DNA of 63,725 bases, counting the filler, from Intoshia linei (Eukaryota > Animalia > Orthonectida), in NCBI GenBank assembly GCA_001642005.1. It is 6 parts of 6 records of this genome, joined end to end, with 100 filler letters (N's around TTAATTAATTAA, not from the genome) between each part and the next. Parts side by side here need not be neighbours in the genome. Positions count along the whole stretch, not along the records: positions 45,612 to 58,175 come from LWCA01001071.1; 5 more parts are not named here. One strand, given 5' to 3'. The position numbers and the translations under genes were made by a program. The notes below the pieces were generated by a model. That model was not told where the DNA came from and searched no databases. It worked only from the letters and a program-made list of their open reading frames with translations. The number at the start of each line of letters is the position of its first letter. Positions within the stretch are counted from its first letter, which is position 1. This document shows positions 4,470 through 58,275 of the stretch, piece by piece.

Positions 4470-6570
4470 ATATAGAATACACAGAGAGGGAAAGGGTTAA
4501 ATTACTTAGTACGTATGATCGTTTTTAAGTGATATATCATATGTGATATGCATTGAAGGGATAATTATCCCTTTCAATTATAATTATTATATATATATAT
4601 ATATAATTAGGACTATAATCCTTTGATTGATTTAAAATTAAATTTTTTTGATTTTAAAACGCGTCTATGTTTTATTAAATTTAGAGCTGATTTTATTTTT
4701 AAAAAAAGGGCTAATTCGGTTTTTGACCATGAAGGACTCAATTTCTGGAAATGAAACATAGATAAAAACATCACCCGTGAAAAACTGTATTCAAAATCAA
4801 TTGGATTTTTTTAATTTTAAGACTGTTCATTTTTTAAATAAACGGTAACACAGACAGAAACACAAAAATTCAATTTTATATTAGTAATGGATTATGTCAT
4901 GATTTAAAATTGTAGTTTCCAATTATGCCCATTATAAAATAATGAATTGTAGTTATAAATGTTGGAAACTTTTTTATATTGATTGTATTATCCAATTAAT
5001 ATTGAAAATTGTACCTCTACGTCACTCGAAAGAGGATTTTCGAATTATTATTGTAAATCACACTCTAATCAATATTCAAAATTTATGAATATTATTCCTA
5101 TATTAATTGAATTTATTGTTTGTTTTTTCTACCAAAAGTAGTGCATGTCTGAAAAACTGATTTGATGTCGCAAATTTGTTTTTTGAAATATGAAAAATAT
5201 TCGGTACAAATGCGATTTTACCAAGCCAAGACTGATCAACTGTAAACTGTGTTAGTTACCTACGCATGAAGTTTTTGACATGATATATCCCTAATTTGCA
5301 TTAAATGCACGACATTGCGGCTCAATATACACATGTTATGTCGTGTACGTCTTAGAAATATAATTAAAAAAATCATGAAGATTTAAAATACCGGTTTCAA
5401 TTTTTTCACTGACGACTTTGTTTGAATTATTATCAGCAAATACACCAAAATTACTATATACTTTAATTCTTTTGCTTTGGCTTAATTTTAAATCTTGATG
5501 TTTCTTACGAGTTGAATTATTCTCGATTACAAATATTTCAGTTGTTTGGGGAAGTTTGCTCTAAAATGCATTGTATGAAGTTATTTATAATTACAGGTGT
5601 TGGTTTCCCTAAATTAAACATACTGTATATACAGTTTCCCATAACTATCAGAATTATCCTAATCCCATTTACATATGTAAATATTGATATACAATATTGT
5701 AAAATTAAGAGTATTTATTTTGCAAGTACCATTTAAAAATTAAATAGTTTCTAATCATTTTTGGTTTCAAAGATCACGCACGTTTAAATGAATATTTATA
5801 ACCAACAATTTTCGTTGAATATTTTGGTAAACAATTGGTAACGTGATATACAATTTTCACTTTATAACTCACATCGGTTTAACAGTAAAATCAATTTCGC
5901 ATGTATTTCATAATAAAACAAATAAATAGTATAGTATAGTGTTGTTTTACCATAAGGGCGTCACTTTGTCAAATTGACGTTTTTAAGGGTGTTTAATGGA
6001 TATGACTATATCAACTGTAAATTTTTTTAAATGCTAGGACTATTTTAATTTTTAAAAAATGGGTACTTTAGGGTTTTGATAGTGAAAATCTAATTTTTTC
6101 AGGTTCAATTTATTATAATCATTATAATTTTAAAAATTATACCAGAATTTATGTTTTATAAATTTAGTACATGTTTCATTTTTTAAATATAGGGACTTTT
6201 GGTTTTCACCATGAAGCTGTGTGTTTCTGAGGCTGAGATTTACGACAATGTTAATCATTTTATAATGCTTCCAAAAATGTATGTTTTATTAAATTTTTAA
6301 ATAAACGGTAATACACACACAGACATTCAACTTTATATAAGTACAGGATGTTCATGAATTAATTCAAATAACATTCATTTTTAAATCGGCACGATTATAA
6401 ATGTACTCAATTTTACTAATCGAAGAATATTCATCAAATGTAGCAGAAAAGTTTATACAGTAGAACTCGTTCTAATAATTCAATCATTTTTAATAGAGAT
6501 CACTGACATCGTTAAAATGCAGTTAGTGACACGCTATTTATTACAAAGTTATTTTATCTGTTTTGCATAA

Positions 6571-7350: not shown

Positions 7351-7899
7351 CAAACTATAACTGTAAACAACTACATCGTACAACTTTGTTATTATCATTT
7401 TTATACAATGATTTCCAATATTGGTAAAATTCATCTGAAATATGTTTTTAAAGTGCTGATACCGTTAATTCTTAACAAAAAAATTGATATTTTTTACTTA
7501 TCGAAAGAAAATATATATATCATCTTTGTTTTTAAAATTATTTACACAAATACATATTAAATTAAAATATTAATTAATTATTAATTAAATGATACTATTT
7601 AATGCTCCGACTAATTTAATAGTTTTAGCGTCTAATTTAATATTTATAACGCATAATTTAATTAATTCAACATTTCATAAGTACAGTGGTCGTCTAATTT
7701 AATGCTTAAGCGTGTAATATAATTATTGTATCATCTAACTTAATATTCGAAACGTTTAAATCAATTTATATAAATTTCTGTTCACCACAAATCAACACTT
7801 CTCATAAGCCGTTTTTTATGTATTATCATTTTTAAGTAAATTTTATACATATATGGTCAGTTTCTCGAAATTCTTCCAATTCAAATCTAAAATTGTGTG

Positions 7900-8240
7900 T
7901 AACAGACCCAAAATTAAGTACTAAAAACTGGACAGATGCGTTTCAATGGGTTCAAAAACAAAATAAATTAAAACAGTTTTGAAAATTTTTTTAATATCTG
8001 AAAATTTTTAAATTCTGTTTGGAAAATATCGCTGGATCGTGAAAATTGGAAGTTTTCCAAGTGTACGTATCCCTTTTGGGGTAAAAATTAAATGTGTAAA
8101 CTTTCTATCGGTATAGCAATACGATTAAGAATTAATTGGTGTATTGTACCTCGAGAGTCGAAAGCTCTCCCATTGAATGTCAACAGAAAAAAAGGACGAC
8201 CAGCTCAGGCTAATCAAGCTTTTCCGAGGCAGTATTAAAT
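7900..8240 (+). pseudogene. MULE (Mutator-like) transposase C-terminal SWIM remnant
   Basis: SKCTYPFWGKN*MCKLSIGIAIRL...PRESKALPLNVNRKKGRPAQANQA resembles the SWIM plus KRKRGRP tail of MULE transposases. Confidence 0.6.
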
Positions 8241-8569
8241 TAACGGTTAATTTAATAAATTAAGTTAGTTTTATAAAAAATAACGTTATGTTTAAATAAA
8301 ATAAATTCTACTTCTATTCTATTATTCTATTATTACTACTATTTTATTACTACTATTCTATTAACCCAATAACAGCTAGTTTATTGAGTTAAATTTTAGT
8401 TAATAAATTAAAAAAGGTTTTAAACATTTACCTTTACATTAAAAAGTTAACATAAATAAATTTTAAAATTTAATATGAATTTAAATTAATCTTACTTTTT
8501 TGATAAAATATATCTTCAGGGCCAAATCGACTGTATATACTCCCTGAAAAATAATTTCAATAATTATAA

Positions 8570-8960
8570 TTATTTCATTAGATATAACCTATTTTACAAA
8601 TGTTCGTAAAAACTGAACTTTGCCCATTCCATACTTTATTTTTTCATTCGTGTAGAAAGCAAGGGTTTTCGAATTTGTTTGTATGATTTGTATCCTGCAT
8701 CTACAAGTTTACGGTTCACTGTTCTTCTTGATAAATTATTATTTTTGGTTTCAAGTTTAGATACGATTTCATTAAAGCTGGAATTTCTGTTTTCCAGTGC
8801 GGTTCTAATAATAATTCTATCAGTTCTTTCATCTGTCCCATTTTTTCTGCCACAGTTTTTTCTTTTGGATACATTCAATTCGTCTGTTTTTAAGTCACTT
8901 TTTTTAGCAAAGATACATATGATTGCGATACACCAATTCTATCAGAAATTTTTTTTGACT
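8570..8960 (-). pseudogene. Tc1-like transposase N-terminal remnant
   Basis: CGRK...TDRIIIR...LSRRTVNRKLVDAGY...RKPLLS...EWAK matches the Tc1/Tc3 HTH region; contains stops. Confidence 0.8.
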
Positions 8961-9053
8961 TTAATTAGTATTTTCAATTAAACCAAATATCATAAATTTT
9001 GAAAATTAATTCCAATATTACCCATTAGTTTAAAATAATAGGTCCCGTTATGA

Positions 9054-9153
9054 NNNNNNNNNNNNNNNNNNNNNNNNNNNNNNNNNNNNNNNNNNNNTTA
9101 ATTAATTAANNNNNNNNNNNNNNNNNNNNNNNNNNNNNNNNNNNNNNNNNNNN
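9054..9153. other. Artificial contig/scaffold linker (44N-TTAATTAATTAA-44N); identical linkers at 26591-26690, 34517-34616, 45512-45611, 58176-58275
   Basis: Five identical 100-bp blocks; the central 12-mer places stop codons in all six frames. Confidence 0.97.
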
Positions 9154-12100
9154 AAGGTTTTTTTTAAATTTAATTCATTAATAATAATAAAACAAATTTA
9201 AAATAACTACTTAAATTGATTCTTAATTCTCGTTATATATCTAAAAACTATTTAATTAATTAATCAACCAAAAAAATTAAATTTTATATCATTATGTACA
9301 GTTTAATTTTATTAAAAATTTAAGATAGTTTCATTCAATAAAGGTAAAGAGTAAGAACATTTTATCTAATGCGCAAAAACTGAAATATCCCTTCATAAAG
9401 TAATATTTTATTGTTGACACTATGTAAACATTGGTAATAAAATTAATTTTGTACTCATATTTCATGAATAATAATTTGTTCACAATTGACATATGTACCG
9501 CCTTATTTTTTTTGGTATGCAAACAATTTAAATTTATCAGTTGATTTTTTTGCATTACGGCAAAGAATAGTAAATTTATGATTGTACTTTTTTGCATGTA
9601 TACGTGTTGTCTCGTAAGGGTTAATTGAATCTTCACTTTATAAATAATTCAGTCGAATTCTACCATTATTGCAAAGGATTGTAATATAAAAATGATTGAT
9701 GTTAAAAATTTGTCCATACTTTTGGCCTTTTTTCTTGTGAATATTACTTTTCTTTTTATCATTTTATGTTAAATTTGTAACACTTATCAATAAAAAAAAT
9801 AACGTTTCAGTTAATATAAATTTAATTTTATAAATTCGTTGCTGTAGTGTTAAAATTTGAAGATTAAAAAATATTTGAAAAATGAAAATTTAAAAATTGC
9901 GTAGCCATGAAAAAAATTCCGAAGGAATGAATTATATAGACTTTCACCCATATGTCTTCATTGAAAATGTGTAGACGTACACATTTTTTTTGAAATTGTA
10001 GGATCAATATTTACATTTTCAATTTTTGATTTTAATCGAAATATTTGAAAAATATTGGTTGATAATATATTAAAAATTACTTTTCACTGGGAATGCGTAG
10101 ATTTCTGGGGATGAAATTTTTTATTTATATCAACTGGAATAAGCTCTATCAGAATAATCCTTTTTTTAAATTTTCAGATTGTTAATTATTTCATATTTTT
10201 TGTTTTAATTAAATATTTCGGAAAAAAATATATGAATACTAAAATGCTTTTTTGTCCGTGAAGTCGTCACTATTCGAATTGAAATTTTATATGTGTATTA
10301 ACAGGATACAACTGTACAACGTGTAGATTTTTTGAAATTATAGGGCTGTTTTCATTAAAAAAAAAAGGGTAATTTGGGGTTTTGGCCATGAAGATGTAAT
10401 TTTTTTAAATTTAAATTTATGATAATGTTTATGATTTTAAAATCCGCATTAATGTATATATTTTTTTAAATTCTCGAACTCGTTTGATTTTCAAAAAGAG
10501 GGACAACAAGGGTTTTTGACCCTTAAGATGTGAAATTGGGAGGTTAAAATATATCTTAATATACGTCCCGGAAAAAACTGTAATTGAAATGTGATCTTTA
10601 AAAAATTCTAAATAAGTTAGGATTATAGTTTATTTATTAGTTTTAAATGTGATTCGATAGTTGCCATATATTATTATAAACTTCATATGGAACCTTTCGA
10701 TGTGTTTTCTAAGTTTTATATAATGTTTGAAGATTTTTCTAAATATTCATTATATAATATGTACATTTTGAGGAATTAGTCCGATATAATAGTTAATTTA
10801 GTATTTATTATGAATTTTGCATCTAAAAATAATAATTATAAAGTTCTCAAACATAGAACTAAATTTTTAGGTTTTTGATATATTTTTTAAAAAATGTATT
10901 ATTTAGGTTTTGTCAATTTATTCAAAAACTGCCTTTAGATTTTTGTAATGATATATCTCATTTTTATTATCTCTAAATTATCTTTAGGTGTCACATCACT
11001 AAACTTATAAATCGTAATTACTTTTTTCAACTTGTACAGCTAAATTCTAATAATTATCAAATCTTTACGTATATGTTGTCGTTCTATTATTTTAATTTAT
11101 ACATATTACATGTAGTACATGTGTATTTGTTTATTAATAAACGTTATTATTTAAATTGTATGTTTTTTTTTGATATCATTAACTTGGTACAATAATTAAT
11201 CAATCAACTCAATGACCCTAATCGATTGGGTAGTATCACTCCGCCATAAAAGTCATTTTCAAAATTTTGAAATGTTTTCAATTTTATAGACTTAAAAAAT
11301 AATCCTTAACAACTTCAATGATTAATGCAGGGTGATCCAAAAAATGACCCGTGGGCCACATGCGGCCCTCCAGATCAAATAGTGTAGTCCGCAAAAGTTT
11401 TTAGTAATATATTTTGTAAAACAGGTAAATATTAAAAATAAATATGATTTAATATTTATGTGCAATTTCGAACTGATTTGCTAATGCTGATTCTATTAAA
11501 CCTAAATTGGAGCTTTTGAATAATTTTATAGATGTAGAAATTAAAATTATTCATAAATATTTCACACAATAAGCAATTTGAGTTGTGTGAATTGCAATCA
11601 GATTATTTCAATAATAATAATTTCATAATTAAGAAAAAAATGTGATTTGACTGACCCTTTTTGAAACGGTATATGCTCGTTTTCAATTTTTAGCTGGGCA
11701 TATAAAATTTGCTGGGCGTATTATTTGAAAAAATATCACAATTACCATATTACTTAGCATTAATTTAAATTTATTAGCAATACTTTATCTTTCTAGTAAG
11801 TACGTACGTCTTATAGTAAGTGGTGAGAAAAATTTCCTAAGTAACACTAGGTTGACTGTTATGTACTACGTACAAACAGCACCTAGCTCTGCCGAGGGCA
11901 GACTTATCTAATTCTACCAAAAATATAAATTTAATAATAAAATGTTAATTAAAAATGCTACTCATTATTAACAATCATTTAAAGAAGTCATTCTTAAACT
12001 TGAATTTTACATTACCTTTTGATTTAAAATAAATAATTCCCACTTATTTTATGTGATTAGCATTTTTGTAAATTGTTTTTTAAAAAAAATTTTGTGATTC

Positions 12101-45611: not shown

Positions 45612-46240
45612 CCAGTTACCACATATTCCAGAAATGCTTCACTCTTCAGTCGAAATAATAAAGAGGAACATATATTAACTCTATTTCATCTCTGCTGATT
45701 TGACAATTAGTGAGGAACCCATATACCGGACCTATTGACCTTTTTAACATATTAAACACACTTGATTTTGAACAACCAGCAACATTAGTAAGCGATCTAC
45801 ATGTTTGAATAGGAGAGATGTTCAATGCTTCTTTTATTGAATCAATATCACTCACGAGAGATCTACCGGAACGTTGGGCATCCCTTAAGCTATAATTTTT
45901 TTTAATGAACTTGGTGAACCATCTTTGTGTTTTTCTTTGTTGTATGACATCTTGGCCATACACACTACATATATTTTGAGTTGCTTTAACAGCAGAATGA
46001 AAATTATTATACTCATACAGTAGAATATGGCGAATATGTTCTTCAAAATCACAAAAGTTTTTTGTCTAAATTCATAATAAATATTAGTGTATATTAATAA
46101 TTTACACTTTCATCTGATGCATCATTAAATATTTTATCCAAAAGCATTGTTAATTTAAAATTATTTTAAATGTTTTTGATCATATGGTGATTATAAAACA
46201 TTGTGAAAATAAAAGCGACATAACTTTATGGACAAGCTAA
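45612..46240 (-). mobile_element. mariner transposon, 5' part, inactivated
   Basis: HIRHILLYEY, VYGQD...QRWF..F...SLRDAQRSGR, WVPH*L, VVTG motifs; terminal TA|TTAGCTTGTCCATAAAGTTATGTCGC. Confidence 0.9.
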
Positions 46241-46498
46241 TATTACAATGTAAGATGTAATATTATACTATAAGTACTATTATAATAGTACAAAAGTATA
46301 ATTTTGATTTGTTTTCTGATTACTGGGCGGATTAATGTTTTGCAGTAAATACATAAATGAAGAAATTGTTGATTACGGTCACAGTAGAATATTTTCAGTA
46401 GATAAAGTTGTTTTTCATTATTATTGTAATATTTTCAAATTGTAAGGTCGTTATTTCAAGTCAATTTTTATAAATATTTAATAAAATACAGTCTAATT

Positions 46499-46916
46499 CA
46501 GTGATTCTCAATCTGTGGGTATTTACCCACGAGTGGGTAATTTGATATTTTTCATGAATAATCGCGAAATTTGTTTTAAAAAATGGAAATTTTTGATTTT
46601 TTTTGGTCATATGCACAGTAACGTATTATATAATTTTTCCTAAATGGAATAATGTAAATAATAACAGTACGTAGTCATGTAAAATAAAAATTTAAATATT
46701 CTTCCTACCATTTCAAAAAAAATCAGGAATTATTTTACTACATGTGTATTTTGTGAAATTAGTTTTTTAAAAATTTTTATTCAATTATTAAAAAATCTAT
46801 ATGGCTCTTATCCTAAAACCCTGGTCATTAAATATGCAGTTAAAAAAATACTGTTGGTAATATCAAAATAAGTACTATAATATGGGTAATATAGTGAAAA
46901 AGGTTGGGAAACACTG
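46499..46916. mobile_element. hAT MITE
   Basis: TIRs CAGTGATTCTCAA / TTGGGAAACACTG; TSD gtctaatt/gtctaagt. Confidence 0.85.
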
Positions 46917-46983
46917 GTCTAAGTCTATATATAATTGTAATTTACAATTATATATGAAATTTCATCTATAAGTAATTATTTAG

Positions 46984-47067
46984 GCGTTAACTTACCCACC
47001 CATTGATGCAGAGGACGGATTCGACGGTTATTCTCGCCATTCAAGAAAGAAAAAACAATACGCATGA
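46984..47067 (+). CDS. Probable terminal exon of an unidentified upstream gene
   Basis: TTTAG acceptor followed by GC-richer ALTYPPIDAEDGFDGYSRHSRKKKQYA*. Confidence 0.4.
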   Translation, partial: ALTYPPIDAEDGFDGYSRHSRKKKQYA

Positions 47068-47603
47068 AAAATAATTAATTGATGTTACAATCAATATAAA
47101 TAAATATTAAATTTCAATTATAAAATATTTTTCAATAACTGGACAAATGTCCTATAATTAGTATATAGTGTAATAGATAAATAATTGAATTATTTTTGGA
47201 TGAAGCATATTTATTGGTAATATATAATTTGTAATATGGAAAGGTTAAAAATGTTGAGCGCCTGTTGAATATTATTTTTGAAAGATTTTGACAAATACAA
47301 TTGGGCTACGAGTGAGATTGTAATCCAGTTACAATTGGGTGACGTAATTAGGTTACATGTGAAGCATGCTGACATTTACGAAACTTCATTAATAGAATTA
47401 CATTTACAAAAATGTTGAATAAATGTTAAATTTTCGGTAATAAAGTTTTAATGCATAGTTGTAGACTGTTAATCCATAACAATATCTAATAATATCAATA
47501 ACAGAGTTATCGAATAACTTGCCAACACGTTATTTACGTCGAATATAAAATTTGACGATATATACTCATTTAAGCCTTAGTTTTAGAAAACAATATTAAA
47601 TTA

Positions 47604-52498
<4,895 letters not shown>

Positions 52499-53208
52499 CT
52501 ATCCTAAACACTACTGGATGAATTATTTTAATAAAATGAAATTATAATCATGTTATGTTTTAATTCGATATTAATATTGTATTTATATAAATATGTGAAA
52601 CTTGATATTGAACTGATTTTGTAGACTCAATATAAATTGATTTTTTCTTTAGGTTGGTTAGAGATGGAACGTATTGCTAACCACAATTTATCTAATTAAT
52701 CTTACTAATTCACACCAATTATTTATGGAAATAAACTTGTTTCCTTACTCATTTATAAACTAGCGATGAAATAGATAAAATGTCTGTCGCAATACTGTTC
52801 GAATCGCCACTGTTTTCCTGAAATCCCTATCGATTTTTGCAAACGCGTCTATGAGAGCACTTTAAACTTAAATCATGTTTCATAACAACTATATTTAGTT
52901 CAACGTATGGATTGCAAATTGTAACCATTTTACTCAATACTACTGTAGTAAGCGTATCAACTATAATGCTATTTTGGAATGAAATTTTATTGAGAACAAC
53001 TAGCTGAAACTTTTTTTCAACTCTACTACCCTAGAATACCATTAATCCAAATTACATTACATGAATAATTCACTAAATTGTTTTAATTGACAATGAAAAT
53101 CATTAAATAATTGTACATTTCATATTCATGTATTTGTTTTCTATTTATTGAATTGCTAATGTGTTAACTCTCACTATATAAACATTCCTCCTGTTTTATC
53201 AATAATAA

Positions 53209-54975
53209 ATGACCAAAGATCGCATCAACGCTGTGAAAGCTGTAATTGTGTATTGTACCTTATTATTTAATACCTTTTTAGTGTCAGGAGAAAGACGGTG
53301 CTGAGTTCCGGGTCGAGGTAGACGGTCCTGTCTATATGCAAGAATTTTTCGAAATGGTTTGGTTGATTTGTCAAATTTACCTGTTTAGGTAGACGAAATT
53401 CGAAAAAACATTGATAACATTAACAACAACATAGAAGCCGTAAAAAAACGGCACAGTTCAATACTTGCCTTGCCTCAAACCGACGATAGTAATTTGTGCA
53501 TTTCTATATAGTAATTTTTGTATAGAAATGAAAGAAGAACTGGAAGAAATAATGAGTGAAATTAAAAAAACCGCCAACAAAGTCAGAGGGAAATTAAAAG
53601 GTAATGCTGTGATTGTTATTTTATTTTTTCTAGTAATCGAACAAAACATTGAACAGGAAGAAATAGCTAATAAAAATGGAGCCGACATCCGTATTAAAAA
53701 AACCCAAGTAATTTTATTATTTAATTTTACTTGCATTACGCACAAACCATACAGTATTCTACCATTTCCCGAAAATTCATCAATGCCATGAATTGCTACA
53801 ATACGGCACAAATCCAATACAGAGATAGCTGCAAAGCTCGTATACAGAGACAAATGGAAATAGGTAAGTGTGTGTTTAATTTGTGTTGTCTTGTAATGTG
53901 CGTGTGTAAATGTTACCTTTAAATGATGCGGCATAATATAACTAATGCTAGGCAAGTAGTATCGCCAACAAACTGACGACCATAATGAGCCATTACTACG
54001 ACTGTCAACAACAATTTCGCATTAACTGCAAAGACCGTATACGGAGGCAGTTGGAACTATGTATGCTATATATCATTTAGAGGCTATGTTGTACATCGTT
54101 TTTTATTGATTTGTTAATTAAGCCGGACGGAACACAAGTAACGAAGAAGTTGAAACAATGCTTGAATCCGGAAATCCTACCATATTCACTCAAGGAGTAT
54201 GTCGTGTGTAATTGTGAAATATTGCCAATTTAGATTGTTACTGAAACCAAACAAGCCAAACAGTACCTCAAAGACATACAAGCCCGCCACAACGACATTA
54301 TTAAATTAGAAAAATCAATAAAGGAATTACACGAAATGTTTATTGATATGGCTAATTTGGTCGAGTCCCAAGTACATTTAATTCATTTAATAATTCCCTC
54401 ATCAATTTAGTCATATTATATATTATAATATATATTTTATATGTGCATTTTGACTATGACATAATTTGCCATCGGGGTTATTTATAGACTATATAATATT
54501 TTGCTAATTATCAATTATATATTAAAATACTCATGTTAGGGCGAATTGATCGACCGAATTGAATATAATGTTGAACAATCTGTAGATTTCATTGAAACAG
54601 CCAAAAGCGACACGCGAAAGGCTGTTCAATTTCAAAGTAGCGCAAGAAAGGTATTTGATGTTGTCTTTTTAAATGTTGTCTTTGTAGAGGAAAATTGTTT
54701 GTGCCGTTGTTTTTTTAATTCTACTCATTATAATATTAACTGTGACTGTAAGTTCTGTCATTCCTCAAGGTTCTACAACTGTAATAGTGGCAAAAAATTC
54801 TACCTTATCCCCTAATACACCTCAGACTGTGTAGTTGTTGTGTGTAATTAAACTGTTTTTGTTATGTTATTATTTGTAAACTAATCAATCTTTGTAGAAA
54901 AAAATATGTATACTCATTTGCCTGATAATTCTTGTTATTGTTATATGCGGAACCTTTGGCGGAATATTTGGTTAA
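53209..54975 (+). CDS. STX1: Syntaxin-1 (Qa-SNARE). Exons 53209-53241, 53282-53356, 53389-53488, 53526-53600, 53634-53707, [53755-53863 or 53952-54060], 54123-54196, 54234-54371, 54540-54650, [54688-54834 or 54898-54975]
   Basis: MTKDR N-peptide, [89 protein letters not shown] plus TMD; 288 aa with the distal last exon. Confidence 0.97.
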
Positions 54976-55674
54976 CCTCCCACCATATATCAAATTTGTA
55001 ATATTGCCATTCCAAGTATTTACTTGAGGAGGATTTGTAACTAGTTCAAATTGTTACATTAAATATAAAACTATGTATTATGTTCAGTCAAAATATGTCC
55101 AATTACGTTATAGTAAAATCAATTATAATTGATTTACGTTATGAATGTATACTTTATTGAATTTATTTATAGATAAAATAGTTTGTGTATGAATATGTTG
55201 TAAATATAAACCAAATTATTTGTGGTTTATGTATATATCATTACAATTACATGGTATCAAATAATTATTACTTTACGTTAATAAATACAGTATAATATAA
55301 TGTATAATCACAAATTTAATAGATATTTAATTTCTTATTACAAATAAATAATACCTTTTCGTTATTTATTATATTTCATTATAATGATTATGTGACCAAA
55401 AAAATTAAATTAAATTTTTATTTATATCAAAATTTAATTTAAATCCAAAAAAGTTTAAACAATTTTTCGGAAGCAATTACCGATTATTTATTTGAAATTT
55501 AATGTTATAAATATGGTTTATTTTATATTTTTATCAATTTTAATCATTTCGAGACTAGTATATTTTTAAATTACTAGACCTCATGATAAGAGGTCGTAAA
55601 ACGTTTTTGAGGTGTCATGTCCAAAGAATCCTAACTTATATAATATGCTACGCGATTTTTGTTTGTGTGTGTGT

Positions 55675-56035
55675 CAGAGCCGTTTTAAAGCATGGGAAAT
55701 ATGGGCTGTAGCCCACGGCCCCTCAGTAAAAAAGGCCCCAAATTAATAAAAGTACTTCACATTTATATCTTAAGAATCAGTTTATAAGTTTTGAAGTGTC
55801 GTAATTCAAATAGCTAGAAAGAAAATAGTTTAAAGAATCAAAGTTCTGGTAATTATTCAATTTAAAATATAATGCTTTTATTAATACTAAATAAAATAAT
55901 ACTTTAAGTCTCCAACCAACAGTTAGCCCTGTCTTCTAAACAGGTAACCTAAATTTTTTAATCGATTGCTCGAAATTTTAAAGGGTCCGGTCCTTTGCTT
56001 AGCCCAGAGCCACGAAGTGGCTTAAGACGGCTCTG
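55675..56035. mobile_element. hAT MITE inserted in the TG tract of a Helitron-like copy
   Basis: TIRs CAGAGCCGT(T/C)TTAA; perfect TSD GTGTGTGT. Confidence 0.9.
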
Positions 56036-58275
56036 GTGTGTGTACCACTTTATTGAAATAACTACCAGTCTTATAATTTTTTTAAGACCACATTTCAATT
56101 ACAGTTTTTTCCGGGACGTATAATATAAATTTCAACCTCCCAATTTCACATCTTACGGGTCAAAAACACCAGTGGTCCCTTTTTTTGAAAATCAAACGAG
56201 TTGGAAAATTTAAACAAATATATACGCTGATACGGATTTTAAAATCATAAACATTAATTTAAATTTAAAAAAATTATATCTTCAGGGCCAAAACCACAAA
56301 TTATCTTGATTTTTTTAATGAAAACAGCCCTAGAATATACAATATATTTACAGTTGTATCCTGTTAACACAAACAGAAAATTTCAATTCGAATAAGTGAC
56401 GACTTTACGGTCAAAAAAGCATTTTAGTATTCATATATTTTTTTTCGAAATGTTTTATTAAAAAAAAAATGTGAAATAATTAACTGTCAGCAAATTAAAA
56501 AAGGATTATTCTGATAGAGCTTATTCCAGTTGATATAATTACATAATTTCAACCACAGAAATCTACCCATTCCTGATGAAAAATAATTTTTAATATATTA
56601 TCAACCAATATTTTTCAAATATTTCGAATTAAAAAAAAATTATATTTAAAATAAAAATTGAAAATGTAAATATGGATCCTACAATTTCAAAAAAATGTTC
56701 ATTGTGCGTCTAAACATTTCCAATAAAGGAATATGGGTGAAATCTATATAATTCATTCCTTTGAAATTTTTTTCATTCCTACGCAATGTTTAAATTTCAA
56801 ATTCTCATTGTCAAATTATTTTGAATAAAATTTAAATAGAAACTAAACAACTTTTAAAACAGCTATTTAGCCAGAATTTGATAAATTAAAACGTTCATAA
56901 AATTCAAAAAAATTGAGCTAGGAACAAATTTAAAAAATCAACTGTATAACTAAACATGGAGAACAATATTATAAAGTCGGTAGCTGGAAAATTAGATTTT
57001 TTATTTGTGGTTTGATGAAGTGGATTTATTTTATAAGATTTCGTAAAATCGAATTTTTGAAAAGAATAAGGTGTAAGTGAATTTTTCCATGAGGGCTTGA
57101 AATGGTATTTTTGATTAAATTTTTTTAGTGGTGGGATTTTTGAAATGGTAAATATTATAATATAATCATATTTTCATAGTAATAACAAACATAAATCAAA
57201 TACATGTATGTCCTTATTTTTTTCAGAAATCTCGGGAATTACTATAACATTGCTGAAATATATTTTGTATTCATAATTTTAGACTCATAATATTTAGCAA
57301 TCATTTTGAGTACTTTTTTTGTAAAATCTTTATTGTATAACGTTAAAGTTAGATGAAATTGTACACTTTTCTCATTCAAGAACTCTCCACAATTTATATC
57401 AATATCATAATCAAAGATTGATAAACCATTCTTTTTAGTGTCGCTTCGACTTTATATCGCTAAAATTAACCGATTCTTGTCTTATCAATAATGAATCAAC
57501 CAATGCAAATATAATTGTTTTATTGAAATTTTAAACAAAATTAATGATGATAATTAATATCCTAATTATAATAAAACTTTAAAAAACAAAAGTTGCACCA
57601 CTTCACAGATATGTTTACTAACACAAAAATAATAAAACTGCAAATAGAGTAACAAATTATATAATAGATAACCAAGAAAATGAAATTACTCAATGCATTG
57701 ATTAAATAGAGCATTACAATTATTACCAATTTAATTTCATGTAAATTAAAACAATGACCAAGGACCGTAGTGCGACTGTAAAAACTGTATGTAAAATTTA
57801 GACATGTAATAATTTTTTTAAAGCATCAAAGAAAACTAACATTTGTTGAAATAGATGAAGAAAGTGTTTTTATGCCAGATTTTTTTGATTTGGTAATGCG
57901 CTTTGAAATTTTTTTATATTAACCCATATACTCCCAGTGTGACCATATGGTCACACAACATTACATTTATAAAAACACGTATCAAATTGAAACAAAGTTA
58001 ATTAAATATGATAAATTAAATTAATTAGTATACTATATAATATTCGAGTATATTAGTTATTAGTTTGCACCGATTTGCATCCTCTGTGACTGACAGTGGG
58101 CCAAAACAATTTTCAAGGCAAAAAAAAAAATTCACTGAAAAATTTTTTATATTTTTTTTGTTAAAGTTGTGATAANNNNNNNNNNNNNNNNNNNNNNNNN
58201 NNNNNNNNNNNNNNNNNNNTTAATTAATTAANNNNNNNNNNNNNNNNNNNNNNNNNNNNNNNNNNNNNNNNNNNN

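Follow-up and report, generated by a model that had tools for sequence, protein, structure and literature searches.

In the orthonectid Intoshia linei, the gene encoding syntaxin-1 was found to contain two tandem exons of equal length, 6a and 6b, which correspond to one and the same segment of the protein. It is probable that these exons are the Intoshia copy of an ancient spiralian exon pair, the members of which are mutually exclusive because of the reading frame; the two resulting isoforms would probably differ in regulation.

Structure of the syntaxin-1 gene and its surroundings

The window analyzed was a stretch of 63,725 nucleotides, in which positions 45,612 to 58,175 come from the record LWCA01001071.1; unless another record is named, positions refer to this window. 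The part from LWCA01001071.1 contains, at 53209-54975 on the plus strand, the gene of syntaxin-1, the plasma-membrane Qa-SNARE (Table 1). Most introns of this gene are very short (32-47 nt). In an exon-by-exon scan, the Pfam families Syntaxin (PF00804) and SNARE were matched in the expected order, with exons 4 and 7 giving weaker matches, and the PDB matches of exons 6a and 6b were syntaxin-1A and squid s-syntaxin only.

Two candidate last exons follow exon 9. With 10a, the gene would encode a protein of 311 aa, and with 10b, a protein of 288 aa; a gtaagt motif is located inside candidate exon 10a, at 54748. Direct reading of exon 10b revealed a hydrophobic C-terminal end of 25 residues, and the anchor encoded by this exon is similar to those of Dimorphilus and of the proteins P0192 and P0193. 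Several anchor variants were also observed in spiralian relatives, for example, in Lineus. In the public annotation of Intoshia, one syntaxin product of 297 aa is given, which corresponds to positions 53209-54899 of the window (7598-9288 of the locus L006). Because only a single product was annotated, exons 6a and 6b cannot both appear in that annotation. The 3' end of the annotated product was probably mis-modelled, as it matches neither the 288-aa nor the 311-aa model.

Upstream of syntaxin-1, a gene of a SERCA-type calcium ATPase is located on the plus strand (approximately 47604-52498); its single 787-codon exon (47973-50336, plus strand) matches A3Q56_06285 of Intoshia linei with 100% identity. 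Two open frames were observed on the minus strand. The product of the frame at 45646-45963 weakly resembled the HTH domain of Mos1/mariner transposases (PF17906, 21.1 bits, below the cut-off of 24.1); this frame, at the edge of the contig, is probably what remains of a mariner element. The other, of 165 codons (53458-53955), is antisense to syntaxin exons 3-6a and was taken as a chance frame in AT-rich DNA.

Table 1. Features of the Intoshia linei syntaxin-1 gene (positions in the window), loci with pairs of 109-nt exons in other organisms (positions in the respective locus or record) and pairs of isoforms in other spiralians.
Feature	Position	Strand	Description and basis
Exon 1	53209-53241	+	Start codon, N-peptide MTKDR...; read from the sequence; start coincides with the annotated gene start
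Exon 2	53282-53356	+	AG/GT flanks, phase
Exon 3 (helix Ha region)	53389-53488	+	Flanks and phase; tblastn of syntaxin-1 orthologues
Exon 4 (helix Hb region)	53526-53600	+	Weak Pfam Syntaxin match, positions 45-68
Exon 5	53634-53707	+	Ends ...IRIKKTQ, phase 0; tblastn of orthologues
Exon 6a	53755-53863	+	109 nt; Hc/linker exon, conserved spiralian '...RQMEI' type
Intron 6a-6b	53864-53951	+	88 nt; contains ACTAAT at 53941-53946
Exon 6b	53952-54060	+	109 nt; fast-evolving alternative Hc/linker exon, probably the '...RQLEI' counterpart
Exon 7 (linker, ...MLESGNP...)	54123-54196	+	Read from the sequence; weaker Pfam Syntaxin match
Exon 8 (N-terminal half of SNARE motif)	54234-54371	+	Flanks and phase; tblastn of orthologues
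Exon 9 (C-terminal half of SNARE motif)	54540-54650	+	Pfam SNARE PF05739, 42 bits
Exon 10a, candidate alternative last exon	54688-54834	+	Membrane anchor and 25-residue tail; AG flank, stop
Exon 10b, last exon	54898-54975	+	Canonical membrane anchor ending ...GGIFG; AG flank, stop
L001, metagenome scaffold			Tandem 109-nt pair, order as in Dimorphilus and Pecten
L002, assembly GCA_020047435.1	195-303 and 531-639		Tandem 109-nt pair
L003, Schistosoma margrebowiei syntaxin paralogue	5228-5336 and 7393-7501		Tandem 109-nt pair
L004, Dimorphilus gyrociliatus CAJFCJ010000013.1	5999-6107 and 6846-6954		109-nt pair, genomic
L005, Pecten maximus	69945-70053 and 70491-70599		109-nt pair, genomic
Isoform pair, Lineus longissimus X5 and X2			Differences confined to the 36-residue segment (RefSeq)
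Isoform pair, Pecten/Argopecten X2 and X1			Differences confined to the 36-residue segment (RefSeq)
Isoform pair, Mizuhopecten X2 and X1			Differences confined to the 36-residue segment (RefSeq)
Isoform pair, P0192 and P0225			cDNA-like contigs; differences confined to the 36-residue segment

Exons 6a and 6b encode two versions of one segment

Both exons consist of 109 nt, are entered in phase 0 and left in phase 1, are flanked by AG and GT and contain no stop codon. The boundaries are acag/TAT and TAG/gtaagt for 6a and gctag/GCA and TAT/gtatgc for 6b. According to a scripted count of the reading frame, the inclusion of 6a alone results in a protein of 288 aa, as does the inclusion of 6b alone, and the first codon of exon 7 specifies Ala when 6a precedes it and Ser when 6b does. 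When both exons were included, the first stop appeared at codon 158 (GGC AAG TAG), and when neither was included, it appeared at codon 169. The first-pass annotation, made from the sequence alone, had given the coordinates of the two exons, their equal length, phases and AG/GT flanks and the ACTAAT motif and had predicted a stop after inclusion of both exons and a frameshift after skipping of both; all of this was confirmed.

The two exons can be aligned without gaps, and 15 of their 36 residues (42%) and 52% of their bases are identical. Outside the exons, the similarity of the flanking introns was not alignable, and a search for a third copy of the Hc/linker exon in the LWCA01001071.1 piece revealed none. 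Exon 6a was aligned to residues 120-155 of rat syntaxin-1A (E = 1e-8) and to squid s-syntaxin (E = 1.4e-12), and exon 6b was aligned to residues 121-155 of the rat protein (E = 1e-3) in register with 6a. The scores of both exons, 30.3 bits for 6a and 27.0 bits for 6b, exceeded the Pfam Syntaxin cut-off of 26.7 bits. In rat syntaxin-1A, this stretch comprises the C-terminal two thirds of helix Hc and, beyond it, 11 residues at the start of the Habc-H3 linker. The alignment agrees with the earlier reading of the exon as Hc of the Habc domain plus the start of the linker and also with the statement that the equivalents of C145 and R151 are retained in 6b, where the equivalent of I155 is L. Judging from these alignments, 6a and 6b are tandem duplicates that encode the same Hc/linker segment.

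The same exon pair is present in other spiralians

A profile of 6a and 6b was searched against 1.8 billion representative proteins. This search yielded read-through ORFs holding two copies of the Hc/linker segment, and the contigs of these ORFs were found to carry tandem 109-nt exons with AG/GT flanks in three loci (L001, L002 and L003). Together with the genomic pairs of Dimorphilus and Pecten, the tandem 109-nt AG/GT arrangement recurs in five loci besides that of Intoshia (L001-L005). In Dimorphilus and Pecten, an exon of the "Y…RQMEI" type is located first and is followed by an exon of the "H…NACQ…RQLEI" type. The second-type exon of Dimorphilus (6846-6954 of L004) is intact, has AG/GT flanks and lies inside an intron of the annotated syntaxin gene; only the first exon type is present in the annotated product, the second having been overlooked.

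Additionally, flatworm syntaxin-1A was used as a word-search query, and the named spiralian syntaxins thus obtained were compared for isoform pairs. Four pairs were found to differ solely within the 36 residues and to be identical elsewhere (Table 1). P0225, a member of one of these pairs, is encoded on L010, a contig of 1076 nt, by an uninterrupted ORF of 291 aa with the second exon type. Because this ORF is uninterrupted, it can be concluded that L010 represents a spliced transcript. The two conserved types consistently differ at approximately 11 positions (1, 2, 4, 9, 17, 18, 24, 25, 28, 31 and 34), and both retain Cys145, Arg151 and Ile155 (rat numbering).

A single exon of the second type was found in Apis and Branchiostoma, and a single exon of the first type was found in the flatworm Macrostomum. 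Since an annelid, molluscs and a nemertean have the pair whereas the outgroups have a single exon, the duplication is older than the divergence of annelids, molluscs and nemerteans. Because orthonectids are nowadays classified within the annelids, the pair was most likely inherited by Intoshia and not invented in it. The first-pass annotation had proposed that conservation be checked in relatives, and the presence of the pair in the genomes of Dimorphilus and Pecten answers this point. The comparison with relatives also strongly supports the mutually exclusive architecture that had been proposed, and the proposal that one gene makes two Hc/linker variants is strongly supported by the isoform pairs of relatives, the cDNA-like contigs and the constraint on 6b described below.

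Several further observations were made in these relatives. The locus of Schistosoma margrebowiei is a second syntaxin gene, which is distinct from Stx1A of that species. The first exons of L002 and L003 clustered together, and so did their second exons (support of 82/94 and 82/79, respectively), at a place in the tree where long branches meet. The second exons of these two loci and Intoshia 6b have in common Thr at position 9 (T-T-I-M or T-I-V-M at positions 9-12), which could be due to convergence or could mark a third old exon type. In Lineus longissimus, the isoforms X6 and X7 (P0188 and P0190) have six differences, all within residues 236-263, and are otherwise identical. These residues belong to the C-terminal part of the SNARE motif, and the pattern hints at a further pair of alternative exons in the Lineus gene.

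Placement of 6a and 6b among the exon types

When exon 6a was compared with the first-type exons of Dimorphilus, Lineus X5 and Octopus, 28 of 36 residues were identical, and in the tree 6a was nested in the clade of the first (Y/M) type with a support of 84/81. In sequence, 6a is an ordinary representative of the first '...RQMEI' type. Exon 6b has just 12-15 of 36 residues in common with any other exon, and its terminal branch was approximately 8 times longer than that of 6a (1.67 vs 0.2 changes per site). In the best tree, 6b joined the spiralian second (H/L) type, nearest to Dimorphilus exon 2, with a weak support of 53/61. When 6b was constrained to be the sister of 6a, this cost 4.7 log-likelihood units (p-AU 0.079), and when it was constrained into the first type, p-AU was 0.15.

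The second position in the pair, Cys18 and Leu34 of 6b fit the second type, whereas Ser2 and Ile4 fit the first. The 3' third of 6b (43 nt) has 70% base identity to 6a vs 56% to Dimorphilus exon 2. Taking the tree and these features together, 6b is likely orthologous to the spiralian second '...RQLEI' type.

Constraint on exon 6b

When 27 canonical exons were compared, 13 columns were found never to vary, and 23 were variable. Exon 6b retains 9 of the 13 invariant residues and only 5-6 of the residues in the 23 variable columns (Fisher p 0.007-0.015), and among the four invariant residues altered in 6b, three are replaced conservatively (T to S, F to L and I to L). Neutral drift was simulated with 6a, Dimorphilus exon 2 or Pecten exon 2 as the ancestor, with 4000 runs per ancestor continued to the observed divergence at the base composition of the syntaxin-1 introns, indels being ignored. 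At least 9 invariant residues were reached in 0 of 4000 runs for each ancestor (0/12,000 in all), and only 8-10% of the runs were stop-free at the end.

The sequence of 6b has acquired no indels over an estimated 83-102 substitutions. Its GC content is 0.43, and the corresponding values are 0.29-0.48 for the other exons and 0.25 for the introns. The donor of 6b (gtatgc) is close to that of exon 7 (gtatgt). The T-tracts preceding the acceptors of 6a and 6b are the poorest in the gene (0.15 and 0.30, respectively, vs 0.40-0.75 elsewhere, in a small sample); regulated exons often have poor T-tracts. These data argue for a coding role of 6b during most or all of its past, with which a recent loss of use would be compatible. 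Most likely, as far as can be judged from the pattern of substitutions, 6b still encodes a variant Hc/linker segment and is under constraint at the protein level.

Alternative explanations for 6b were considered. It could be a relic, i.e., the ancestral second exon, which is unspliced in Intoshia and drifting, so that the gene yields the 6a isoform only. A branch 8 times longer than that of 6a, matches to other exons at 12-15 of 36 residues at most and the alteration of 4 of the 13 invariant residues would all fit a relic, and an exon abandoned recently could resemble 6b. A word search with the 42-aa open frame of 6b gave no transcript fragment, which says little in view of the length filter of that search. 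The donor of 6b (TAT/gtatgc) is also further from the common gtaa form than the gtaagt of 6a, and its pyrimidine tract is poor. However, the tract of 6a is equally poor, and the 6b donor resembles that of the constitutive exon 7. Moreover, the frame has remained open, the length exactly 109 nt and the AG and GT intact after approximately 90 inferred substitutions; 9 of 13 invariant residues are retained, an outcome that none of the 12,000 neutral runs produced; the changes at invariant positions are conservative in three of four cases; and the GC content is coding-like. A relic is therefore considered improbable. That 6b is merely a chance open frame in an intron, resembling the neighbouring exon, can hardly be credited: short open frames are numerous in this AT-rich genome, but 6b by itself scores above the Pfam Syntaxin cut-off (27.0 bits), is in register with residues 121-155 of syntaxin-1A and has the length, phase and flanks of 6a, in an arrangement that recurs in five other loci.

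According to another explanation, 6b does function but does not descend from the ancestral '...RQLEI' exon; that exon was lost in the orthonectid lineage, and 6a was later duplicated anew. Residues S and I at positions 2 and 4 of 6b, as in the first type, the higher identity of its 3' 43 nt to 6a (70%) than to Dimorphilus exon 2 (56%), and the TGC and CGT codons that 6a and 6b have in common in these 43 nt agree with such a history, and the AU test leaves the sister grouping of 6a and 6b standing (p 0.079). On the other hand, 6b and the spiralian second type have Cys18, Leu34 and the second position in common and are grouped in the best tree, where Dimorphilus exon 2 is the nearest neighbour of 6b; the similarity of 6a and 6b within one genome may reflect common codon usage; and the loss of an exon plus a new duplication of the same exon require more events. 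This explanation is regarded as unlikely, and the inherited pair of mutually exclusive exons is preferred.

Exon choice and its possible consequences

For the inherited pair, exclusion could be provided by the reading frame itself. Because 109 nt is not a multiple of three, the frame stays intact only in mRNAs with exactly one of the exons 6a and 6b. The mRNAs with both exons or with neither have an early stop and would presumably be removed by nonsense-mediated decay. The choice between the exons may be regulated through their weak acceptors. Neither a docking nor a selector RNA structure was detected when the region 53708-54122 was folded (z = -0.57), and the search for inverted repeats gave only short, weak ones. 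Since exclusion enforced by RNA structure was thus unsupported, frame-based exclusion was preferred. Steric exclusion was also rejected: the 88-nt intron between 6a and 6b exceeds the constitutive introns of the same gene (32-47 nt) in length and thus leaves enough room for the two exons to be spliced together.

In the closed form of rat syntaxin-1A, the Hc/linker region is packed onto H3, and linker residues mediate the action of Munc13. Because the segment encoded by 6a and 6b packs against the SNARE motif and carries linker residues related to Munc13, the two isoforms would most likely differ in the balance between the closed and open forms or in control by Munc18 and Munc13. A more specific reading, in which the second Hc/linker form of Intoshia was remodelled at an 8-fold rate for a lineage-specific secretory role and the pair is a switch older than the divergence of annelids, molluscs and nemerteans that gives each of these animals two syntaxin-1 forms with different closed/open or Munc18/Munc13 behaviour, is conceivable but rather doubtful.

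The first-pass annotation had also suggested that the pair replaces paralogues in a reduced genome. This suggestion was rejected, because the pair is ancestral and is present in the ordinary large genomes of other spiralians. Apparently, in Intoshia, an animal with an extremely reduced genome and approximately a dozen neurons, a splicing choice was kept rather than invented.

The Hc/linker segment holds syntaxin-1 closed and carries the residues for its opening by Munc13, which gives it a central place in controlling transmitter release. The natural alternative versions of this segment in annelids, molluscs and nemerteans are ready variants for testing how it tunes Munc18 binding and opening. 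If the more specific reading of the pair as such a switch is true, the exon pair would constitute an unrecognised layer of SNARE regulation across the superphylum, including the squid and Aplysia models. Studies published on the syntaxin of squid, leech or Aplysia may cover only one of the two isoforms.

Comparison with known systems

A description of an alternative Hc exon in any syntaxin was not found in the full-text literature searched, a scope from which subscription journals were mostly absent. With regard to the novelty that had been supposed for the duplicated Hc exon, it holds for this literature, but RefSeq isoform models already contain the pair. Automated annotation of other species already shows the pair, and it is hence less new than had been hoped.

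In the SNAP-25 gene of vertebrates, exons 5a and 5b arose by an old tandem duplication, are mutually exclusive and encode two variants of one helix segment (PMC2581893). Both this pair and that of Intoshia are old tandem exon duplications in neuronal SNARE genes. However, SNAP-25 is a Qbc SNARE and belongs to another clade, and its alternative exons affect the SNARE motif and the palmitoylation region, not an autoinhibitory domain. Mammalian syntaxins 2 and 3 have alternative C-terminal isoforms. Alternative C-terminal exons were also described for unc-64, the plasma-membrane syntaxin of C. elegans (PMC4946901). The alternative exons of unc-64 and of syntaxins 2 and 3 affect either the membrane anchor or the last part of the SNARE motif and not the Hc/linker segment; it is exons 10a and 10b of Intoshia that seemingly parallel them. 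The best structural match of 6a, squid s-syntaxin (PDB 1S94), has the first '...RQMEI' exon type and, being a single solved isoform, is uninformative on the alternative exon.

The isoforms X1 and X2 of scallops (Pecten maximus/Argopecten irradians and Mizuhopecten yessoensis) and X2 and X5 of Lineus involve the same gene, the same segment and tandem 109-nt exons in the same order as in Intoshia. In scallops and Lineus, both exon types are highly conserved and the isoforms are present in the public annotation, whereas Intoshia has a very divergent second exon and a single annotated product. The intron between the two exons also differs in length: it comprises 212-738 nt at the syntaxin-1 loci of the metagenome scaffold L001, Pecten and Dimorphilus, 227 nt in L002 and 2056 nt in the Schistosoma paralogue, compared with 88 nt in Intoshia.
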